A DNA stretch of 64,000 bases, taken from the sequence record NC_061421.1. The stretch is one strand, 5' to 3'. The position numbers were made by a program, and so were the translations under genes. Below the pieces are notes generated by a model that did not search any database, was not told the DNA's origin, and saw nothing but the letters and a program-made list of their open reading frames with translations. Below are positions 56,451 to 63,887 of the stretch, piece after piece (within the stretch, counting starts at the first letter, position 1; each line of letters begins with the position of its first letter).

Positions 56451-56458
56451 AACAAAAA

Positions 56459-56513
56459 AAAGGATCTTTCGATCCTTTCTCCCCTACAGAGAGCCAATGC
56501 TCTCTGTAGGGGA
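56459..56513. terminator. Two tandem hairpins at the portal convergent junction
   Basis: AAAGGATC-TTTC-GATCCTTT and TCCCCTACAGAGAGC-CAAT-GCTCTCTGTAGGGGA. Confidence 0.8.
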
Positions 56514-56521
56514 TTTATTAT

Positions 56522-58726
56522 TTAGTCGTGGGTACGTAAGACGAGAACAAAGCTGTCAGACTTCTGATCCTGGTAATCTTTCCGAACTTCAAACCAGCTG
56601 TTATCTGCAAACCAGATATAGTTAAAGCACGCGATGTCGCTGTTAGCATTGAAGGTCAACGCCTTTAATGCGCTATGAAGTTTAGGAGAGGAGAAAGAGG
56701 AAACTAACAGCGGTTCGTTAGGTTTCTCTTCGCCGGTGATCGACAGTTTCAGGTCATTCACTAACACGGGTGCAATAACCATGTTAATGCGTTTAACGAC
56801 ATAGATCGTTCTGGCGTCAGTGCTTTCGCTTACACCTGCACCAACAATCCCGGAACCGACTTTGAACATCTGGAAATTGCTGATGTGGAATGCAAATGCT
56901 GCGGCAAGTTTCGCCGCGAACTCCGCCCCACGTTTTTCCGTGACATCGTCATACAGGGTTGCCAGATCTTCAAACGCTTCGATACGTAAACGGCATCCCA
57001 TTTCCAAACGGAAGATGCTGTTAACCAAATCAACGATATGACGTTTCGCTGCGACGACCAGTGCTGCCGGAACACGCTCGATAACCCGATTGAAGTTGTC
57101 GTGAATATCTTGCAGGTATTTCAGCTCTACGCCGTCTTTGAAATTGAGACCGGTCATGTCAAGATGACGCAGAACATAGTTTGCTTCTTCTGCAGTCGCA
57201 CAAGTCATGATTGGTTCATACAGCTCTGCGCCCGTTTGGAACGTATTGAAGTTGGTGTGGAGATGTCCGCTTTGATCGTTAGTTGCTTCCTCGCAACGTG
57301 ACATTTCTTGCAGACGGATATGACCCATCCCGAAACCTTTTACGATCTCATCTGAACGCAGGATTTGATCAAAGGTGATTGACCCGGCGTCAGGGGCATC
57401 AGGGATAACTTTTTGCAGTTCTTCTGGTTGTCCCTCGTTCTCTTCGCGAATACTTTTAACAACGGCTTCGTACTCTTCGCGGTTCTCGTCGCGGAGTTTA
57501 CGGTTTGCCGTGACGTTGAAACGCGGAGCGCCAAGCGCGTCGCGTATTTCACTGTTTTTCGGGTGGAAGCGGTAATTCGCTTCTTTTGCCCCGACAATGT
57601 TTAACTGGTGAATTTTACGATCCACTTCTGCTACCTCTTCTGGGTTAAGGGGCTCGTAACGGACGAAACGATAACCGTCTTTCGTGATGTCCCATACCGG
57701 GCGAACGGAATCAGCTTCCCACACGATTGTATCATTACGAAGTTGTTCGTTCGGATGCAGCGGAATAGAAAGTACAACTTCGAGGTCCGTCAGATCAATA
57801 CGCCCAGACTTTACATCTTCCGCAGTAATCGGGCCGGTGGCCAGGAGATTACCTTTACTGGAACGTTTTTCGACGACAGGGGCTTTGGTTGAGGTCGTCT
57901 GACGCGAACGAATATTCTCCGGTTCAACGCGCTCGTACGCCGGACGGTTAGCTCTCCGCGGATCAGGGGTGCTAAAAGCCTCACCCATCTTTTCCTCGAA
58001 GGCGTCGTCAATCTGCTGGCGATTTTCTTGCGCCTGCTGTTCCATCGCTTCCCGACGCTGCGCTGCTGCAACATATGCGTTTTGACCCCGGCGATTTTTG
58101 CGACTGGCGTTGATATCCGGTGCCTGCGTGTGACGGTCTGAGCCATACCCATTAGCACGCGGACGAGTCGGGATCGGAGACTCATAACGCCCGCGGCGTT
58201 CTTCATTGTACCCCCGACGATCATCATAACGCCCTCGCGTATCGCGATCTTCGTAACGCCCACGGTGTTCCGGTCCACGGCCAAATCCGCCACGACCGCG
58301 ATCATCTCTGCTGTACCCCCGACGATCATCATCGTAACGACGACGATCAAGTTCTTCCGCGCGACGTTCTAATGCGCGACGAAGTTGGTTGGCGTTATCG
58401 GCCAGATAAAGAATTTCGTCTTCGGTGCGGCGGTCAGGAATCTCCGCACGACGGTCTTCTTTGATCAAAGCACCGGCAAAATACGCGGCCAGTTCGATGG
58501 CGCCTTCCCAGAGGTCACGTGGTTCTTTTCTTGCTTCGATCAACATGTCCATTGAGTCGAAGACAAAATTGATCAAATTTTCTCGGGTCGTACGAATTTC
58601 CCGACAAACATCATCGAGATAACCAAAAATCATGTCGTTACGCCCAAGTTCACTGATACGCTCGTCTAAGAAGCGGGCCAGATTACGTTCCGTGAACTCC
58701 ATATCATCTCTGCGACGATTGAACAT
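56522..58726 (-). CDS. Conserved hypothetical protein (734 aa) with an Arg/Asp/Gly/Tyr low-complexity region
   Basis: Third gene of the nvRNAP beta-N operon; RRYDDDRRGYSRDDRGRGGFGRG... segment. Confidence 0.75.
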   Translation of the reverse strand: MFNRRRDDMEFTERNLARFLDERISELGRNDMIFGYLDDVCREIRTTRENLINFVFDSMDMLIEARKEPRDLWEGAIELAAYFAGALIKEDRRAEIPDRRTEDEILYLADNANQLRRALERRAEELDRRRYDDDRRGYSRDDRGRGGFGRGPEHRGRYEDRDTRGRYDDRRGYNEERRGRYESPIPTRPRANGYGSDRHTQAPDINASRKNRRGQNAYVAAAQRREAMEQQAQENRQQIDDAFEEKMGEAFSTPDPRRANRPAYERVEPENIRSRQTTSTKAPVVEKRSSKGNLLATGPITAEDVKSGRIDLTDLEVVLSIPLHPNEQLRNDTIVWEADSVRPVWDITKDGYRFVRYEPLNPEEVAEVDRKIHQLNIVGAKEANYRFHPKNSEIRDALGAPRFNVTANRKLRDENREEYEAVVKSIREENEGQPEELQKVIPDAPDAGSITFDQILRSDEIVKGFGMGHIRLQEMSRCEEATNDQSGHLHTNFNTFQTGAELYEPIMTCATAEEANYVLRHLDMTGLNFKDGVELKYLQDIHDNFNRVIERVPAALVVAAKRHIVDLVNSIFRLEMGCRLRIEAFEDLATLYDDVTEKRGAEFAAKLAAAFAFHISNFQMFKVGSGIVGAGVSESTDARTIYVVKRINMVIAPVLVNDLKLSITGEEKPNEPLLVSSFSSPKLHSALKALTFNANSDIACFNYIWFADNSWFEVRKDYQDQKSDSFVLVLRTHD

Positions 58727-58756: not shown

Positions 58757-60367
58757 TTAATTACTGATTTCGTCTTGTACTTGGTCAAGGAGCTCAATGT
58801 TTTTCGGGTTGCGGATAAACTTCCCGGATTCGTCGGTGTGGGCGTAAACGTTTAGCCGTCCACGACCGTCGGGAATACCTTTGGCGAAATTACACACTGA
58901 GCCACACTCCATGATACTGGCGTGGAGGTGATATGCTGCTTCATTAGGTTTGAAGCTTTTTGTCTTCCCTTTACCAATAACTGCGTTGACTTGACGAATA
59001 GCGATACATGTATGCTTGAAGATCATGTTGTCGCCGGGGTATTGTACCGAGTTCAATTCGCCGTGACCTCGCTGAATGCCTAAGAAAGCATTCGTTGTCA
59101 GGAAACTTGAAAGTTTCCAAGTCAGACGTTTAAGTCGGAGAGTTTTCTGTTCTTTTTCCAGTTGCCATGTAAAGTTGAAAATACTCTCTGTAATGCCCGA
59201 TAAAGCATAGCGCTTCACTAAGAGATACTTACCCCACATGTTACCGGAGTTATCGTCTTTAAGACGATCCTGAATCGTTTCCAGGATATGGATAAACAAC
59301 TCGTACAAGTCGTTTGCCATAATCCCTTCCTGACGAAGGTTTTTCTTTGTTTCTCCGTCGACGTAACTGTCGAGCGACTTGAGATGAAGATCCACTTTGT
59401 TTAGCAGTTTCCCTTCGTTCTCATTTCCTTGGTGTAAAATGAACCCCATGATAATACGCCATGTATCAGGCATGTCGATATATTGCAAACTGAAACGGTT
59501 AGGATAACGGTCAACCACGTAGAAGAAATGCGTGGCCAGCAGTTTAACCCCAATGTTCTCTGTTGCTTCACGAGGAATGATCAACGCAAGGTTAGTCGGT
59601 TTCCAGTCGGAGATCGCTCGGCGGCGCTCTGGCGGCGGAAGACCTTGTGTAGTGTAAACCACATAGTCTTCTATTGGGTATTGCTCACGGAGGTTTGCGT
59701 GGTTCTCCTCTATCGCGACGTCAATCCCATAGAACCGTTTGAACGTCTCGGTCACTCCATATTTACAGAAGAGATAATGACCAAGGGTAGAATGGAACTG
59801 TTTACTTTTCCCTTCATTCCCTGTTTTTCCCTGATAGATGTTACCGTAAACAACGAAGGATGGGATAGATTCCCCGTCCTGTAGTAACGTATAGATACTC
59901 CGTTTTAACGTGAACTTGGCACGGAAAAGAATCGTGAAAAGATCGTTTCCGGCAACCGAGAACACCAGGTCGGCAAGAATAGGGTGAATCGTTGCACGAC
60001 TACCGCCGAGCCAGATAGTTCCTGCTTCTCGAACAAACGGGATGTTGATATTACGCTGGAGAATGTGCGTGCCCTGAAAACGTAACTTCATCTCGGACAT
60101 CACCGCATCGGTTTGTGCTATGTCGACTTCCCCTCTTCGTTCGGCTTTCTCATTTCCCTTGATAATCGCCTGTGCCTCTTCGTAAGGCGTTAACCGGCGC
60201 ATTCCTAAATACTCTACGTCGGGCGGGTAATCTTGCGCTGCACATTGCGCAATACGGTCGACATACGCCTCTGCGTCTTCCATGTCCTTTACAGCAAACC
60301 CGCCGGCGATATCCGGGTTAAACTTCGGTAAAGGATCTACGATATCATCGAACAGTACGTTATCCAC
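58757..60367 (-). CDS. Non-virion RNA polymerase beta-like N-terminal subunit (phiKZ gp123 type)
   Basis: P.FNPDIAGGF start, NIPFV, HYLFCKYGVTETF, LHASIMECGS...GRGRLNVY; second gene downstream of the capsid gene. Confidence 0.85.
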   Translation of the reverse strand: MDNVLFDDIVDPLPKFNPDIAGGFAVKDMEDAEAYVDRIAQCAAQDYPPDVEYLGMRRLTPYEEAQAIIKGNEKAERRGEVDIAQTDAVMSEMKLRFQGTHILQRNINIPFVREAGTIWLGGSRATIHPILADLVFSVAGNDLFTILFRAKFTLKRSIYTLLQDGESIPSFVVYGNIYQGKTGNEGKSKQFHSTLGHYLFCKYGVTETFKRFYGIDVAIEENHANLREQYPIEDYVVYTTQGLPPPERRRAISDWKPTNLALIIPREATENIGVKLLATHFFYVVDRYPNRFSLQYIDMPDTWRIIMGFILHQGNENEGKLLNKVDLHLKSLDSYVDGETKKNLRQEGIMANDLYELFIHILETIQDRLKDDNSGNMWGKYLLVKRYALSGITESIFNFTWQLEKEQKTLRLKRLTWKLSSFLTTNAFLGIQRGHGELNSVQYPGDNMIFKHTCIAIRQVNAVIGKGKTKSFKPNEAAYHLHASIMECGSVCNFAKGIPDGRGRLNVYAHTDESGKFIRNPKNIELLDQVQDEISN

Positions 60368-60388: not shown

Positions 60389-61384
60389 TTATAAAACAAC
60401 CGCTGCGCCCCACGCCGCTTTTTTCGCCAAAAAGGACAATAACCATTTTCCTGCTCTCAGCATTGTTGGGAGAATCGACTTAATAAACTCTCCGCCTGCT
60501 TTAATCCATGCAGAGGCGAGTTTCGCTTTCTTCTCTTTGTCTTCTTCCTTTTCAGGTTTCGCTTGTTTCAGCGCCATCTGAATCTCTTCGAGTTCCTTTA
60601 ACACAGATTCTCTAGAGGTGTGGAATTTGATTCCCAGTGGATTATTACCAGAAAGCGCATCTTCGAAACTGAAGAAACTCTTTGAGGCCAATAACCGATT
60701 CCCTCCCTTTATTCTACCATAGCTTTGCGCGGTAACGCCGTCAGGTTCGATTGACGCCCGTGAGACATTTACTTTCATCACTTGTCCGCCTAAAGCATAA
60801 TAGAGTCCTTCTACATAACGCTCTTTATCGACGGCATTCACCACAATACCTGACACCTTACTGATTTTGCAACCGGTATCGTCTTCGACAATATCGTGAA
60901 TACTTTCTTCACGATCAAGAAACGACGCTCGTGTGATCTTCATCCCTAAACCCGGGATGTTAACCTCCGAACCCAAATCGTTAAAGTCGTTTTCATCAAT
61001 CACGAAAACCATTCGATAACGATAATGGTTTCGCGAACGACGCTTCTCTTCTTCGAAATGTACCATGCAATGACCTTTCACGGCGTCATAAAGGCCAAAG
61101 CTCGCTTCAGCATAATTATTCTGAGGGTCGTCAATATTGACCGTGTCTGTGCAATAAATGACCGTCAGATGAATAATTAAACAATCGCGTAACTTCGCTG
61201 CGCCGTGGGAAAATAACTCATTGTCAGTCCCATCTGATTTTTGCACCGCCAAACCAAAACGATAATTGTTGGTCATCTCCACGGTAACGCAGAGATCACA
61301 ATTACCGGTTCGATAATCGTTTGCAGAAATCAGTGTCTCTAGGGGCATCTGTTCTTTTCTTGGATTCTCACGCTTATAAACCAT
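60389..61384 (-). CDS. Conserved hypothetical early protein with a C-terminal amphipathic helix
   Basis: First gene after the early promoter; C-terminus KLASAWIKAGGEFIKSILPTMLRAGKWLLSFLAKKAAWGAAVVL. Confidence 0.75.
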   Translation of the reverse strand: MVYKRENPRKEQMPLETLISANDYRTGNCDLCVTVEMTNNYRFGLAVQKSDGTDNELFSHGAAKLRDCLIIHLTVIYCTDTVNIDDPQNNYAEASFGLYDAVKGHCMVHFEEEKRRSRNHYRYRMVFVIDENDFNDLGSEVNIPGLGMKITRASFLDREESIHDIVEDDTGCKISKVSGIVVNAVDKERYVEGLYYALGGQVMKVNVSRASIEPDGVTAQSYGRIKGGNRLLASKSFFSFEDALSGNNPLGIKFHTSRESVLKELEEIQMALKQAKPEKEEDKEKKAKLASAWIKAGGEFIKSILPTMLRAGKWLLSFLAKKAAWGAAVVL

Positions 61385-61432
61385 CCTACACCTTATTTGT
61401 TAATTGGGAACGGAATACTTCTTACCGTACGT

Positions 61433-61476
61433 TTGACCTTTCTCAAGGGTCAATTTGGATCTTTCTCAAGGATCCA
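61433..61476 (-). promoter_or_regulatory. Tandem bulged GAGA-tetraloop hairpins in the 5' leader
   Basis: Minus strand TGGAT-CCTTGAGAAAG-ATCCA-AA-TTGAC-CCTTGAGAAAG-GTCAA. Confidence 0.65.
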
Positions 61477-61487
61477 TTAATACTCTC

Positions 61488-61503
61488 TCAATAAGGTAAT
61501 ATA
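61488..61503 (-). promoter_or_regulatory. Putative early (vRNAP) promoter TATATTAC-CT-TATTGA
   Basis: Exact phiKZ early core TATATTAC; upstream of an nvRNAP subunit operon. Confidence 0.75.
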
Positions 61504-61536
61504 GGTTTCAAGAAAATTCGATATGGCAAACATAGA

Positions 61537-61565
61537 CCCAGTCCCTCGCAATGCGAGGGACTGGG
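61537..61565 (-). terminator. GC-rich hairpin after the capsid gene, with no poly-U and followed by TC-TATG
   Basis: CCCAGTCCCTCGC-AAT-GCGAGGGACTGGG; CATA at 61531-61534. Confidence 0.75.
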
Positions 61566-61598
61566 CTAAGGCTTATTTAACTAAGCAATGACGCTAAC

Positions 61599-63887
61599 TT
61601 AAGACGCCGGGGTAACCTGGGTCTCGTTAACATCCAGCGCGGTGCGCTGCGCGATCGCTTCTTCCAGGTTGATCACGTTGATGACCAGCATGATCGGCAG
61701 GAAGTTGAAGTAACGGTAACGCGGGGTCAGGCGGATTTCACGGCCGATACGTTGGTTACGGATCATGTTGAAATCAACCAGGTACTCAGGGATGAAGCCC
61801 AGAACACCGTGCTGCAGCGGATGCGGCTCAGACTCGTTCGGCAGGATGAAGGTCATGACGATTTTGTCTTTCATACGCAGATCGGAGATACGCGCGATGG
61901 TGTAATCGTAACCGATACCCACGGTGCGGTCATCGCCATTGATCTGGATGTACTGCGGCAGACGCATGTCAGTACCGATCGCTACGTGCGGCTTCGGAGA
62001 ACGGCCAGAGAAGGCAGCTTCCAGAGCAGCGGTGTAACCGGTCAGCTGATCAGCGGTGTAAACCATTTCGTTGATTTTGGAAACGATCAGGCCCTGGATA
62101 TCGGTCTGCTTAGCAGCCGAGGTCAGGTTGTTCAGATCGTTCAGCACGTCAATGGTCGCTTCGTTGTAGTACGGACGAACGTAGTACTGGCCAACGCCTT
62201 CCAGACCGAGGTTAGATTCGATCGGATGCGGTACACCAACGCCCAGGTAGGACTTCAGGGTGTCGGCGCGGTTCAGCAGGGTGGTCACAGCGTTGTTACG
62301 CATCTGCTGAATACGGTACGCAGTGGTCAGTGCTTCCAGGCGCGGATAGGTTTTGTCGTCTTCAACCATGGCCGGTTTAACGATGACCAGCGGCGGCAGA
62401 GTCGGGATCATGAAGCCCTGTTTCTGTACGTCGGAGTCGATCAGCAGGCCCATTTCCAGCTGGTTGATGTTGGTCAGACGCGCTTCCAGGCTATAACCTA
62501 CGCCGGTTACGGTCAGGCCGCTCAGTGCCGCAGAAACGCGAGAATCGGTCAGGGCGATTTCTTTGCCTTCTTTATCGAAGACACGCGCCAGACGCAGGGC
62601 ACGCAGAGAGGTGTCGCCGTTACCGTTTTCGACGTTCATTTCGCCGTCAACTTTCACGTCCAGTTCGATGCGGTAGCCCAGATCAAACAGATCTTTCAGC
62701 AGTGCAGATTCCGCGCCAGCCACGGTGGTGCTTTCTTCGCCCAGGCCCAGGGAGGTGTGGAACTTCAGCTGCATCAGACGGAAGTTGTATTCACGGGTCG
62801 CCGTGTACGCAGCGTACTGGTCGCGGTTTACGTCCAGTGCGAACAGTTCAGTGGTACCGCCTTTGGTGACCGAGATCAGAAGCTGTTTCAGCGCAATACG
62901 GCTGTCCAGGGAGTCGGTAAAGGTCATGGAACCTTTTTTCAGACGGGACGGAGTTTGCGCCAGCATCAGCAGGTTGAAGCCTTCGCCGTTTTCGCTGAAT
63001 TTCAGGAAGTTGGTGTCGAAGGTATCTTTACCTTGTTTCACGGTCTGCGCAGGCAGGACGGACGGATCGATGAACTGTTCGTCGTTTTCGCCGGACTGGA
63101 TAACCGGGATCAGCTCGGTGCTGTTGGTTTCCAGAGTGGTGTAATCCAGCAGACCTTGCAGGATGTTACGTTTGGAGATCTCTTGTTTCTCGCCGCTCAG
63201 ACCTTCGCCGGTCCAGCCTTCCCATACCAGGTTACGACGGATAGAGAGCTGGAAGCCAGCCTGGTCCGGGGTAACGATATAGGTGCGATAGAACAGTTCA
63301 GCGAACTCGTGCTGTTTTGCCACGATCATGTTGATCGCGTAGGAATGTTCGCGCCATTTTTCGGTTTCTTTCTCATCGAAAGATTCCAGAGACGGCAGAG
63401 ATTTTGCCGGCAGAGTCGCGATGGAACCGTTAGCGCCTGCGGAAACGAATTCGTTCACGCGAACGTCGCTTTCGAAAGACGGAACGGCGTAACCGTCACG
63501 GTAATACGCACGCGGGCTGTTGTGGGACATCGCCAGAATAGCGGCAGCTTCCACTGCAACTTCTTTCTGGTGCTGGCGCAGGTCATCACCGCCGTCAACG
63601 AAACCTTCGCCTTCGCCATCAACCGCGTCGGTAGCTTCGGTGATCGCAGAGATCTGCTCAACCGCGTCGTTCAGGGAATCCTTCACTGCTTCCAGGGTGT
63701 TTTCAATGTCATCAGCCTGAACGCCCAGCGCGTCGTAGCTTTCCAGAGCTACGGACATGACACCGGCAGCCTGACCCTGTGGCAGCATTGTGTGGTTCTT
63801 TTCAACGGACTGGCGAACGCTGTCGACCAGTGATTTAATTGCGCCAGCAGCGCCGGCGTTAAGAAGACCTTTTTTAGGACGTGCCAT
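61599..63887 (-). CDS. Major capsid protein precursor (phiKZ gp120 / SPN3US gp75 type)
   Basis: 762 aa; acidic propeptide ending ...PSLE|SFDEK; FAELFYRTYIVTPDQAG and PRYRYFNFLPIM segments; very strong high-expression codon bias; AAGGA SD. Confidence 0.9.
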   Translation of the reverse strand: MARPKKGLLNAGAAGAIKSLVDSVRQSVEKNHTMLPQGQAAGVMSVALESYDALGVQADDIENTLEAVKDSLNDAVEQISAITEATDAVDGEGEGFVDGGDDLRQHQKEVAVEAAAILAMSHNSPRAYYRDGYAVPSFESDVRVNEFVSAGANGSIATLPAKSLPSLESFDEKETEKWREHSYAINMIVAKQHEFAELFYRTYIVTPDQAGFQLSIRRNLVWEGWTGEGLSGEKQEISKRNILQGLLDYTTLETNSTELIPVIQSGENDEQFIDPSVLPAQTVKQGKDTFDTNFLKFSENGEGFNLLMLAQTPSRLKKGSMTFTDSLDSRIALKQLLISVTKGGTTELFALDVNRDQYAAYTATREYNFRLMQLKFHTSLGLGEESTTVAGAESALLKDLFDLGYRIELDVKVDGEMNVENGNGDTSLRALRLARVFDKEGKEIALTDSRVSAALSGLTVTGVGYSLEARLTNINQLEMGLLIDSDVQKQGFMIPTLPPLVIVKPAMVEDDKTYPRLEALTTAYRIQQMRNNAVTTLLNRADTLKSYLGVGVPHPIESNLGLEGVGQYYVRPYYNEATIDVLNDLNNLTSAAKQTDIQGLIVSKINEMVYTADQLTGYTAALEAAFSGRSPKPHVAIGTDMRLPQYIQINGDDRTVGIGYDYTIARISDLRMKDKIVMTFILPNESEPHPLQHGVLGFIPEYLVDFNMIRNQRIGREIRLTPRYRYFNFLPIMLVINVINLEEAIAQRTALDVNETQVTPAS

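Follow-up and report, generated by a model that had tools for sequence, protein, structure and literature searches.

The stretch of DNA analyzed here (the window) is the last 64 kb of the genome of Klebsiella phage vB_KpM_FBKp24 (MW394391.1, genus Maaswegvirus); a window position equals the MW394391.1 record position minus 243,210. The 401 bases surrounding the hairpins match this record at 100% identity. For genome-wide searches, the whole FBKp24 genome of 307,210 bp was put together from the record. Its genes include a nuclear-shell protein homologue, a tubulin-like protein, and split RNA polymerase subunits, which marks FBKp24 as a phiKZ-like nucleus-forming jumbo phage. We describe a pair of small hairpins at 61433-61476, in the leader of an early operon, around which all genes are on the minus strand. 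Upstream of the leader lies the major head protein gene (61599-63887, minus strand), and downstream lie 3 minus-strand genes: those of a 331-aa protein (60389..61384), a 536-aa protein (58757..60367), and a 734-aa protein (56522..58726). The operon is syntenic with phiKZ gp122-gp123-gp124. The order of the capsid gene and the 3 operon genes is the same in PhiEaH1 and phiKZ; in PCH45, the 3 operon genes are present but the capsid gene is not upstream.

The 536-aa product of the middle gene belongs to phrog_2943, is the homologue of phiKZ gp123, and matches 7OGP_E in the PDB with E = 2.4e-61; gp123 is a beta-like subunit of the phiKZ non-virion RNA polymerase (PMC8287921). The first-pass annotation had named this product nvRNAP beta-N: its assignment to the non-virion polymerase holds, and the subunit is corrected to the gp123-homologous, beta-like one. 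The 331-aa protein, a positional homologue of phiKZ gp122, falls into phrog_7727, a family of unknown function. It has no Pfam, PDB, or fold match, and none of 9 homologues has a Pfam match. Its AlphaFold model (mean pLDDT 66.5, pTM 0.41) found no match in a fold search of the PDB, where the best E was 0.058 with TM below 0.2. The model, of moderate quality, has a beta-rich core and a C-terminal helix of approximately 70 residues with a hydrophobic tail at its end. A Rep-like identity for this protein was considered and discarded: the atlas score, 0.76, does not rise above chance, and neither Pfam nor fold searches support it.

The 734-aa protein is a positional homologue of phiKZ gp124 and has no family, Pfam, or PDB match. 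Its residues approximately 100-200 form an RG/RD-rich low-complexity region; the region is also rich in Y and carries repeats like RGRYDDR. Such a region is also found in the PhiEaH1 and PCH45 proteins, and in phiKZ gp124 a Q/N/P-rich region replaces it. The protein bears a weak atlas similarity (score approximately 0.5) to Alba and nucleocapsid-type proteins. Family, PDB, and fold searches detected no RNA-binding domain in any of the 3 operon products.

Two terminators frame the operon. The intrinsic terminator of the major head protein gene (61526..61566, minus strand) was found by terminator scan and is also annotated as a terminator in MW394391.1; it consists of a 14-bp stem (61566-61536) and a CTATGTTTG tail, and it is kept with compensatory changes in Siatvirus and in a second Maaswegvirus lineage (lineage B, below). 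The CTATGTTTG tail is like the conserved TTAT-type tail of phiKZ terminators and includes TATG, the core of the phiKZ late promoter; a transcript started late at this tail would cover the hairpins too. The operon-end terminator (56454..56483, minus strand) has a GGATC/GATCC-based stem, a GAAA loop, and a T8 run. On the coding strand from 61384 to 56522, there is no terminator-like site inside the operon; the sole one is this terminator 3' of the last gene (56483-56454). As a side observation, the operon-end terminator and the first of the twin hairpins are both built on a GGATC/GATCC stem, and the 5' side of the terminator carries GAGAAAGGATC. Only 4 hairpins in the FBKp24 genome have such a stem. 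The likeness is not found in Siatvirus KpSz_1, so we take it as coincidence.

Between the capsid terminator and the hairpins lies an early (virion RNA polymerase) promoter (61486..61525, minus strand), with a TCGA element near -30, a T-rich element near -20, the block TATATTAC at 61503-61496, and then CCTTATTG; TTTCTTGAAACC and ATATCGAA stand upstream of the block. Exact copies of TATATTAC are rare, with 4 in the FBKp24 genome. Relaxing the block reveals a sharp family, TTCGA-N5-TTTnAnGnC-TATATCAC-yyTAwTG, and the promoter before the hairpins is the TATATTAC variant of this genome-wide TATATCAC family. A position weight matrix (PWM) built from 20 FBKp24 sites finds 28 sites in the genome, all on the minus strand, as are nearly all genes; the promoter before the twin hairpins scores 39.8 bits against this matrix. 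Four sites are in the window (first base of TATAT at 7, 24159, 35818, and 61503, minus strand), and 24 more are elsewhere in MW394391.1. Siatvirus KpSz_1 has the same promoter family, with 27 sites all on one strand, and the 2 phages share 22 orthologous pairs of early promoters. The promoter before the hairpins is invariant in 7 distinct relatives.

An early-promoter consensus has been published for phiKZ, 201phi2-1, OBP, EL, and N1M2 (PMC7058600, Table 2), and the FBKp24 motif fits this Chimalliviridae consensus. In phiKZ and 201phi2-1, the AT-rich block is an extended -10 element centered near -10, and early transcripts begin approximately 7 nt after it (PMC11512511, PMC8244752, PMC7598289). 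Judged by its motif, the promoter before the twin hairpins is a genuine Chimalliviridae early promoter, and the published offset would place the transcription start at G 61489, +/-2. The hairpins lie downstream of this promoter and should therefore be present in the RNA leader. They had been described as starting about 10 nt after an early promoter; the promoter proves to belong to a genuine 28-site family, and the distance is amended, as its last conserved base lies approximately 12 nt 5' of the first hairpin. The GenBank record annotates a promoter at 61498-61529, which is a PhagePromoter prediction that we did not count as evidence; the 28-member family is not among the annotated promoters of the record, which are predictions of the same kind. 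Public RNA-labelled runs with the leader sequence amount to wastewater contigs without direction; these hold a Centimanus-like variant in which the hairpins are unchanged.

Two further observations concern the promoter family. The start region CCTTATTGAGAG (61485-61496) resembles the hairpin apex CCTTGAGAAAG (61461-61471 and 61438-61448), with the same ends and a 3-nt difference in length. In addition, a sub-family of weaker promoters, TATATTGC/TATATAGC, occurs at record positions 96659, 118318, and 139761, as well as 121331 and 243217, of which only 243217 is in the window. Its members have a near-identical leader in common, consisting of GAAATAGGAAAG, a loop, CTTTCY, and then AACTAAAC, which looks like a repeated leader cassette.

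The operon leader is approximately 105 nt long: the AUG at 61384 is at approximately +106 from the likely start. On the minus strand, 61433-61476 reads as 2 hairpin units of 21 nt (61476-61456 and 61453-61433), 2 nt apart, with an identical 11-nt apex, CCTTGAGAAAG. Hairpin 1 (61456..61476, approximately +14 to +34) has a 6-bp basal stem, a bulged C, 2 U-A pairs, and a GAGA loop. Hairpin 2 (61433..61453, approximately +37 to +57) has the same apex, set on a 6-bp basal stem of its own sequence. Between the 2 basal stems, pair 2 differs (G-C in unit 1, U-A in unit 2), as does pair 5 (U-A and C-G), and both differences are compensated. There follows a 23-nt segment (61410..61432, minus strand) with a weak third hairpin in the minimum free energy structure; it corresponds to a gap in the Siatvirus alignment and has variable positions including 61428. 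The distal leader (61385..61409, minus strand) is A/U-rich and contains the Shine-Dalgarno sequence AAGGTG (61394-61389) before the AUG.

The sequence of 61433-61476 reads as the first-pass annotation had described it: 2 units, 2 nt apart, 1 apex, and 2 compensated pairs. The fold drawn there is also the predicted one. A 50-nt stretch folds as the 2 hairpins at -13.0 kcal/mol (z = -2.94), and 0 of 200 shuffles are as stable, while the single hairpins are modest at -5.9 and -5.6 kcal/mol. When the units are compared with each other, 2 pairs are changed on both sides and 95.8% of cells are paired, against 20-62% in slid controls. In a simulation of 4 random substitutions in 1 unit, all 8 pairs are kept at p = 0.006 when only Watson-Crick pairs count, and at p = 0.028 when G-U is allowed; all 4 substitutions fall outside the apex at p = 0.035. 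Folded as DNA, either strand forms the twin hairpins equally significantly (z approximately -4).

The hairpins had also been said to lack a U-tract and so not to be terminators, and this is confirmed: the tails after them are AAAUUG and AACGUA, and the terminator scan reports neither as an intrinsic terminator, an element defined by a G+C-rich stem and a U-run or TTAT-type tail. Rfam 15 covariance models give only sub-threshold chance matches, mostly on the capsid terminator. A search for the apex finds the 11-mer CCTTGAGAAAG at these 2 sites only, both within the window and in the whole 307,210-bp genome, and no further copy in a hairpin context rises above chance genome-wide. The motif is likewise unique in the KpSz_1 genome, and it is thus not a regulon-wide operator. 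A Dam/SeqA role, suggested by 2 GATC sites in hairpin 1, was set aside: GATC is not depleted in the genome (observed/expected 0.90), and hairpin 2 has no GATC. The twin hairpins are a real, modestly stable leader pair with clear evidence of selection on pairing.

Relatives extend this picture. The comparison set comprises 7 distinct versions of the leader; in a cross-genus MAFFT alignment, non-equivalent arms are aligned together. Within Maaswegvirus, the spacer and position 61428 account for all differences between FBKp24 and Centimanus, 5 Logan contigs, and the wastewater contigs. Lineage B was reached via a 95%-identical gp122-like protein (P0001) and is represented by L067, L071, and L074 (Logan contigs SRR30397397, SRR21633404, and SRR19631087); it is an unsequenced lineage present in public read sets. 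A near-complete copy of 306,749 bp is filed under Klebsiella pneumoniae (WP_107333849.1). In lineage B, the first U of the upper stem of hairpin 1, within the apex, is changed to C and 1 basal U-A pair is gained; hairpin 2 shows an uncompensated loss of its 2 outer basal pairs. L074 has G-C in place of an A-U pair of hairpin 2, with both sides changed. The selection on pairing that had been proposed from the units themselves is supported both within the genome and by 1 more compensated pair in L074. The apex of hairpin 2 is invariant in 5 Maaswegvirus variants.

Siatvirus keeps the promoter and has hairpin 1 identical at 21/21 positions apart from the outermost base, with variable flanks. At the place of hairpin 2, it has a different hairpin, GGAAC-GAAA-GTTCC, with 12/23 positions in common with hairpin 2 of FBKp24. 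Moabitevirus has the same promoter type followed by 2 unrelated hairpins at the same place; between Moabite and Totoro, a G.U pair in the first of these is replaced by U-A through a double change, and the G.U pairs in the Moabitevirus leader are possible only in the sense RNA. The PhiEaH1 leader has 2 hairpins without the FBKp24 apex motif, and PCH45 and phiKZ have short leaders without hairpins. Further searches added little: a protein-guided scan of IMG/VR returned FBKp24 itself only, a profile scan of JGI metagenomes found nothing, the promoter-plus-apex pattern gave 41 loci in IMG/VR of which only FBKp24 and 1 Siatvirus are real, and the promoter 19-mer had 2 matches in JGI metagenomes, both by chance.

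The conservation is mixed. All 5 Maaswegvirus variants and Siatvirus fold as 2 hairpins (-11.6 to -13.7 kcal/mol). Within Maaswegvirus, 8 of 46 columns vary in the hairpin region and 5 of 75 in the remainder of the promoter and leader, 3 pairs are broken without compensation, and the pair-count score is matched by 104 of 500 shuffles. We conclude from the compared leaders that 2 hairpins after this promoter are a conserved architecture and that the twin with 1 apex is a Maaswegvirus peculiarity that is not strictly kept. The first-pass annotation had proposed a comparison across relatives, and it upholds the 2-hairpin arrangement while confining the twin apex to a single genus. Hairpin 2 stands where Siatvirus has a GNRA hairpin and still has flanking bases in common with it, which suggests that hairpin 2 may have arisen by partial copying or conversion from hairpin 1.

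The twin is also not alone in its genome. Folding of the 75 nt that follow each of the 28 early promoters gave a 5'-proximal hairpin in approximately 12 cases (roughly half), each with its own sequence. Over their first 45 nt, the 28 early leaders as a set are far more structured than dinucleotide shuffles (z = -6.8). Examples are at record positions 58405, 64497, 77947, 99150, 159505, and 243217, and in the window at approximately 24145 and 35800. Between orthologous leaders of FBKp24 and KpSz_1, pairing is kept through compensatory changes at 4 record positions: C-G to U-A at 64497, A-U to G-C at 77947, G-C to A-U at 99150, and several changes at 243217. The hairpin at 99150 is conserved as well as hairpin 1, so the cross-genus conservation of hairpin 1 is not exceptional; the G.U pairs of the 99150 hairpin are mismatches on the other strand. 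Across the 28 leaders, there is no asymmetry between sense and antisense RNA stability. Most other leader hairpins begin at +1 to +7, compared with approximately +14 for hairpin 1. These leaders take away the special status that had been given to the twin, as many early leaders have a 5'-proximal hairpin of their own that is conserved between genera. We found no description of an early-leader hairpin class of this kind in the jumbo-phage literature examined. In its simplest reading, the class serves a general purpose in early mRNAs.

We tentatively favor, at a little short of an even chance, the reading that the twin hairpins are a cis-acting RNA structure of this general leader class that shapes mRNA fate. 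The virion RNA polymerase would make an early mRNA from the TATATTAC-type promoter, encoding the gp122-, gp123-, and gp124-like proteins and carrying 2 small stem-loops at approximately +14 to +57 of its 5' leader of approximately 105 nt. Selection would hold the pairing of leader hairpins while their sequence drifts. The hairpins would then confer resistance to 5'-end-dependent decay and/or provide a folding context for translation, rather than act as an on/off switch. That RNA and not DNA is what acts, and that mRNA fate is what it affects, are our inferences.

Several results point to this structural role: the 2 compensated pairs between the units and the additional one in L074; the fold (z = -2.94) behind a genuine promoter family with a published start offset; the 2 Moabitevirus hairpins at the same place, with their G.U to U-A change and sense-only G.U pairs; and the joint z of -6.8 for the 28 leaders, together with the compensatory KpSz_1 orthologues and the uniqueness of the apex. 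Other results sit poorly with it. Hairpin 1 begins approximately 13 nt from the likely 5' end, further than classic 5' stabilizers tolerate, and each hairpin is weak, at approximately -6 kcal/mol. A purely structural role leaves the identical 11-nt apex unexplained, and in the Maaswegvirus leader, the hairpin region shows no greater conservation than the remainder. Finally, DNA folds are equally significant, and the sense RNA is not more stable than the antisense RNA.

A specific RNA operator, a candidate that we regard as possible but not probable, would explain the shared apex: an RNA-binding protein of the phage or the host, perhaps as a dimer, would read this apex twice and regulate only this operon, at the level of stability or translation and perhaps autogenously via 1 of its 3 products. 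The identical apex sits on 2 different stems, all 4 unit differences avoid it (p = 0.035), Siatvirus has variable flanks around an unchanged hairpin 1, and the hairpin-2 apex is invariant in 5 variants. The motif is unique in the genome, as expected of an operon-specific site, and the 734-aa product has an RG/RD-rich region of a kind frequent in RNA-binding proteins, besides its weak Alba/nucleocapsid-type similarity. The strictly sequence-specific twin site that had been envisaged is nonetheless not supported by the relatives: Siatvirus has a single copy, lineage B has U to C inside the hairpin-1 apex, and Moabitevirus deviates as well. Moabitevirus, PhiEaH1, PCH45, and phiKZ keep the operon without the motif, and all but phiKZ keep the Arg-rich region; the suggested link to the Arg-rich product is not supported, as the region persists in PhiEaH1 and PCH45, whose leaders lack the motif. 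No RNA-binding domain was detected in any operon product, and other leader hairpins, such as that at 99150, are equally conserved. The hairpins end approximately 40 nt 5' of the Shine-Dalgarno sequence, which makes direct occlusion of the ribosome site unlikely. We consider it improbable that the twin is a 2-site operator read by a phage protein such as the RG/RD-rich gp124-like product. In the broader form of this reading, early transcripts of the virion polymerase would have hairpins near the 5' end as a functional hallmark. Processive antitermination of the nut/put type, acting on the transcribing polymerase, was the other half of the original proposal, and GNRA-type twin hairpins directly after an early promoter are indeed placed like lambda boxB and HK022 put. 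We disfavor it to the point of near dismissal: the coding strand has no terminator-like site between 61384 and 56522 for such an element to overcome, the leader has no boxA-like sequence, in this phage family the virion polymerase, and not the host enzyme, transcribes the early genes, and relatives that have the same operon do not conserve the element. Overall, the operator/antitermination interpretation is partly supported: its specific account of an operator and of antitermination is not established, and parts of it are contradicted; a protein-binding operator at the twin hairpins is a possible candidate.

The fact that both DNA strands fold as twin hairpins (z approximately -4) admits a DNA-level element, in which palindromes just past the start would be repressor sites or hairpins extruded from the melted or non-template strand and would influence how the virion RNA polymerase initiates, escapes the promoter, or pauses. 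The positions +14 to +57 are where escape and pausing are decided, and the initially transcribed bases CCTTATTGAGAG resemble the apex CCTTGAGAAAG. We rate this, too, as improbable. A double-stranded palindromic operator would conserve its half-sites instead of swapping both halves together, the G.U pairs of related leader hairpins can form in sense RNA only, and a 23-bp spacing puts the 2 sites on different faces of the helix. The analysis found no DNA-binding protein candidate, the Rep-like lead for the 331-aa protein being at chance level. A twin design without selected function is somewhat more doubtful: a local 23-nt duplication or conversion of hairpin 1 onto its neighbor would make the likeness of the apices a matter of recency. 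This fits the restriction of the twin to 1 genus, the 12/23 positions that hairpin 2 still has in common with the Siatvirus hairpin, the free decay of hairpin-2 basal pairs in lineage B, and the rank of the hairpin region as the most variable part of the leader. It fits poorly with 4 stem differences arranged as 2 perfect compensations, which is unlikely without selection on pairing (p approximately 0.006), with another compensated pair in L074, and with the presence of a hairpin at this place in 3 genera. Very unlikely, in our estimate, is a role for a leader mini-ORF of 3 codons (AUG GAU CCU UGA, 61477-61466, minus strand), which begins in the 5' arm of hairpin 1 and would couple ribosome loading to leader unfolding. 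Its AUG is at +13 with a purine-rich run 5 nt upstream, and AUGGA stands at the matching place in PhiEaH1. At the equivalent AUG, a 9-codon ORF is present in Moabite and Totoro (L012:1338-1367 and the equivalent in L011) with GGAG 4-5 nt upstream, and the 4 substitutions between them are all at third codon positions; stem compensation explains the same substitutions too. The AUG is replaced by AAG in Siatvirus and by UUG in lineage B, and the peptides, of 3-9 codons, are unrelated.

Next to nothing is known of how nucleus-forming jumbo phages control their early genes once these are transcribed. The operon behind this leader encodes a subunit of the polymerase to which middle and late transcription passes. 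If the hairpins set the level of the operon mRNA, they would help to time the switch between the 2 phage polymerases; if the 2-site operator were true, a nucleus-forming jumbo phage would have an operon for a non-virion RNA polymerase subunit that is controlled autogenously after transcription. For now, the twin looks like an ordinary leader structure, apart from 1 unusual feature: its duplicated apex. The hairpins look like 1 case of a widespread leader-hairpin habit in this phage group, and not a demonstrated gene switch. The 28-member promoter family and the leader hairpins kept across genera may be more useful than the twin itself, as they constitute a concrete, testable set of cis-elements for early mRNA fate in chimalliviruses.

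Known RNA elements help to place the structure. Its short hairpins with GNRA-type loops, placed in an early phage leader, recall the nut sites of lambda and P22. The nut site combines boxA and boxB and is bound by N, whose Arg-rich peptide reads the hairpin. Lambda boxB has a 5-bp G-C stem and a GNRA-like pentaloop, whereas the FBKp24 units have a 6-bp stem, a bulged C, 2 U-A pairs, and a GAGA tetraloop. The coding-strand leader has no match to boxA within 3 mismatches, and the count across the window is that expected by chance. Unlike at nut, there is no boxA, there are no downstream terminators, and a phage multisubunit polymerase transcribes. HK022 put, which acts in cis, likewise consists of 2 adjacent stem-loops immediately 3' of an early promoter. 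Its stems are larger, and it acts on the beta' subunit of the host RNA polymerase so that terminators are read through; both nut and put act on the host enzyme. The twin hairpins differ in having no terminators downstream and in following a promoter of the phage polymerase type.

The operators of MS2, PP7, and T4 gp43 are also bulged hairpins, with a sequence-specific loop that is bound by a phage protein. They overlap the ribosome-binding site of the regulated gene, whereas hairpin 2 ends at 61433 and the Shine-Dalgarno sequence is at 61394-61389; in addition, the bulge of the MS2 and PP7 coat-protein operators is a purine, and that of FBKp24 is a C. The twin hairpins do not qualify as nut, put, coat-protein operators, or intrinsic terminators by the features that define these elements.

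Closer parallels are found among structures of the mRNA 5' end. The FBKp24 hairpins share with ompA-type stabilizers their small size, their predicted position near the 5' end, the conservation of pairing with gene-specific sequence, and the lack of a terminator tail. Classic 5'-terminal stabilizers (ompA-type 5' UTR hairpins) extend the half-life of the mRNA and need almost no unpaired 5' tail; the first FBKp24 hairpin is approximately 13 nt from the likely 5' end, and it comes in 2 copies with 1 apex. In phiKZ and 201phi2-1, structured 5'-UTR elements and 5'-UTR-derived short RNAs have been described (PMC10914365 / bioRxiv 10.1101/2023.10.13.562163; PMC11512511). Like the FBKp24 leaders, these are conserved structured leaders, found by position and conserved among relatives; they are bounded by premature terminators (a hairpin with a TTAT-type tail), whereas the FBKp24 hairpins have no such tail. 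By analogy, the twin hairpins probably work most like the 5'-UTR stem-loops of bacterial and phage mRNAs.
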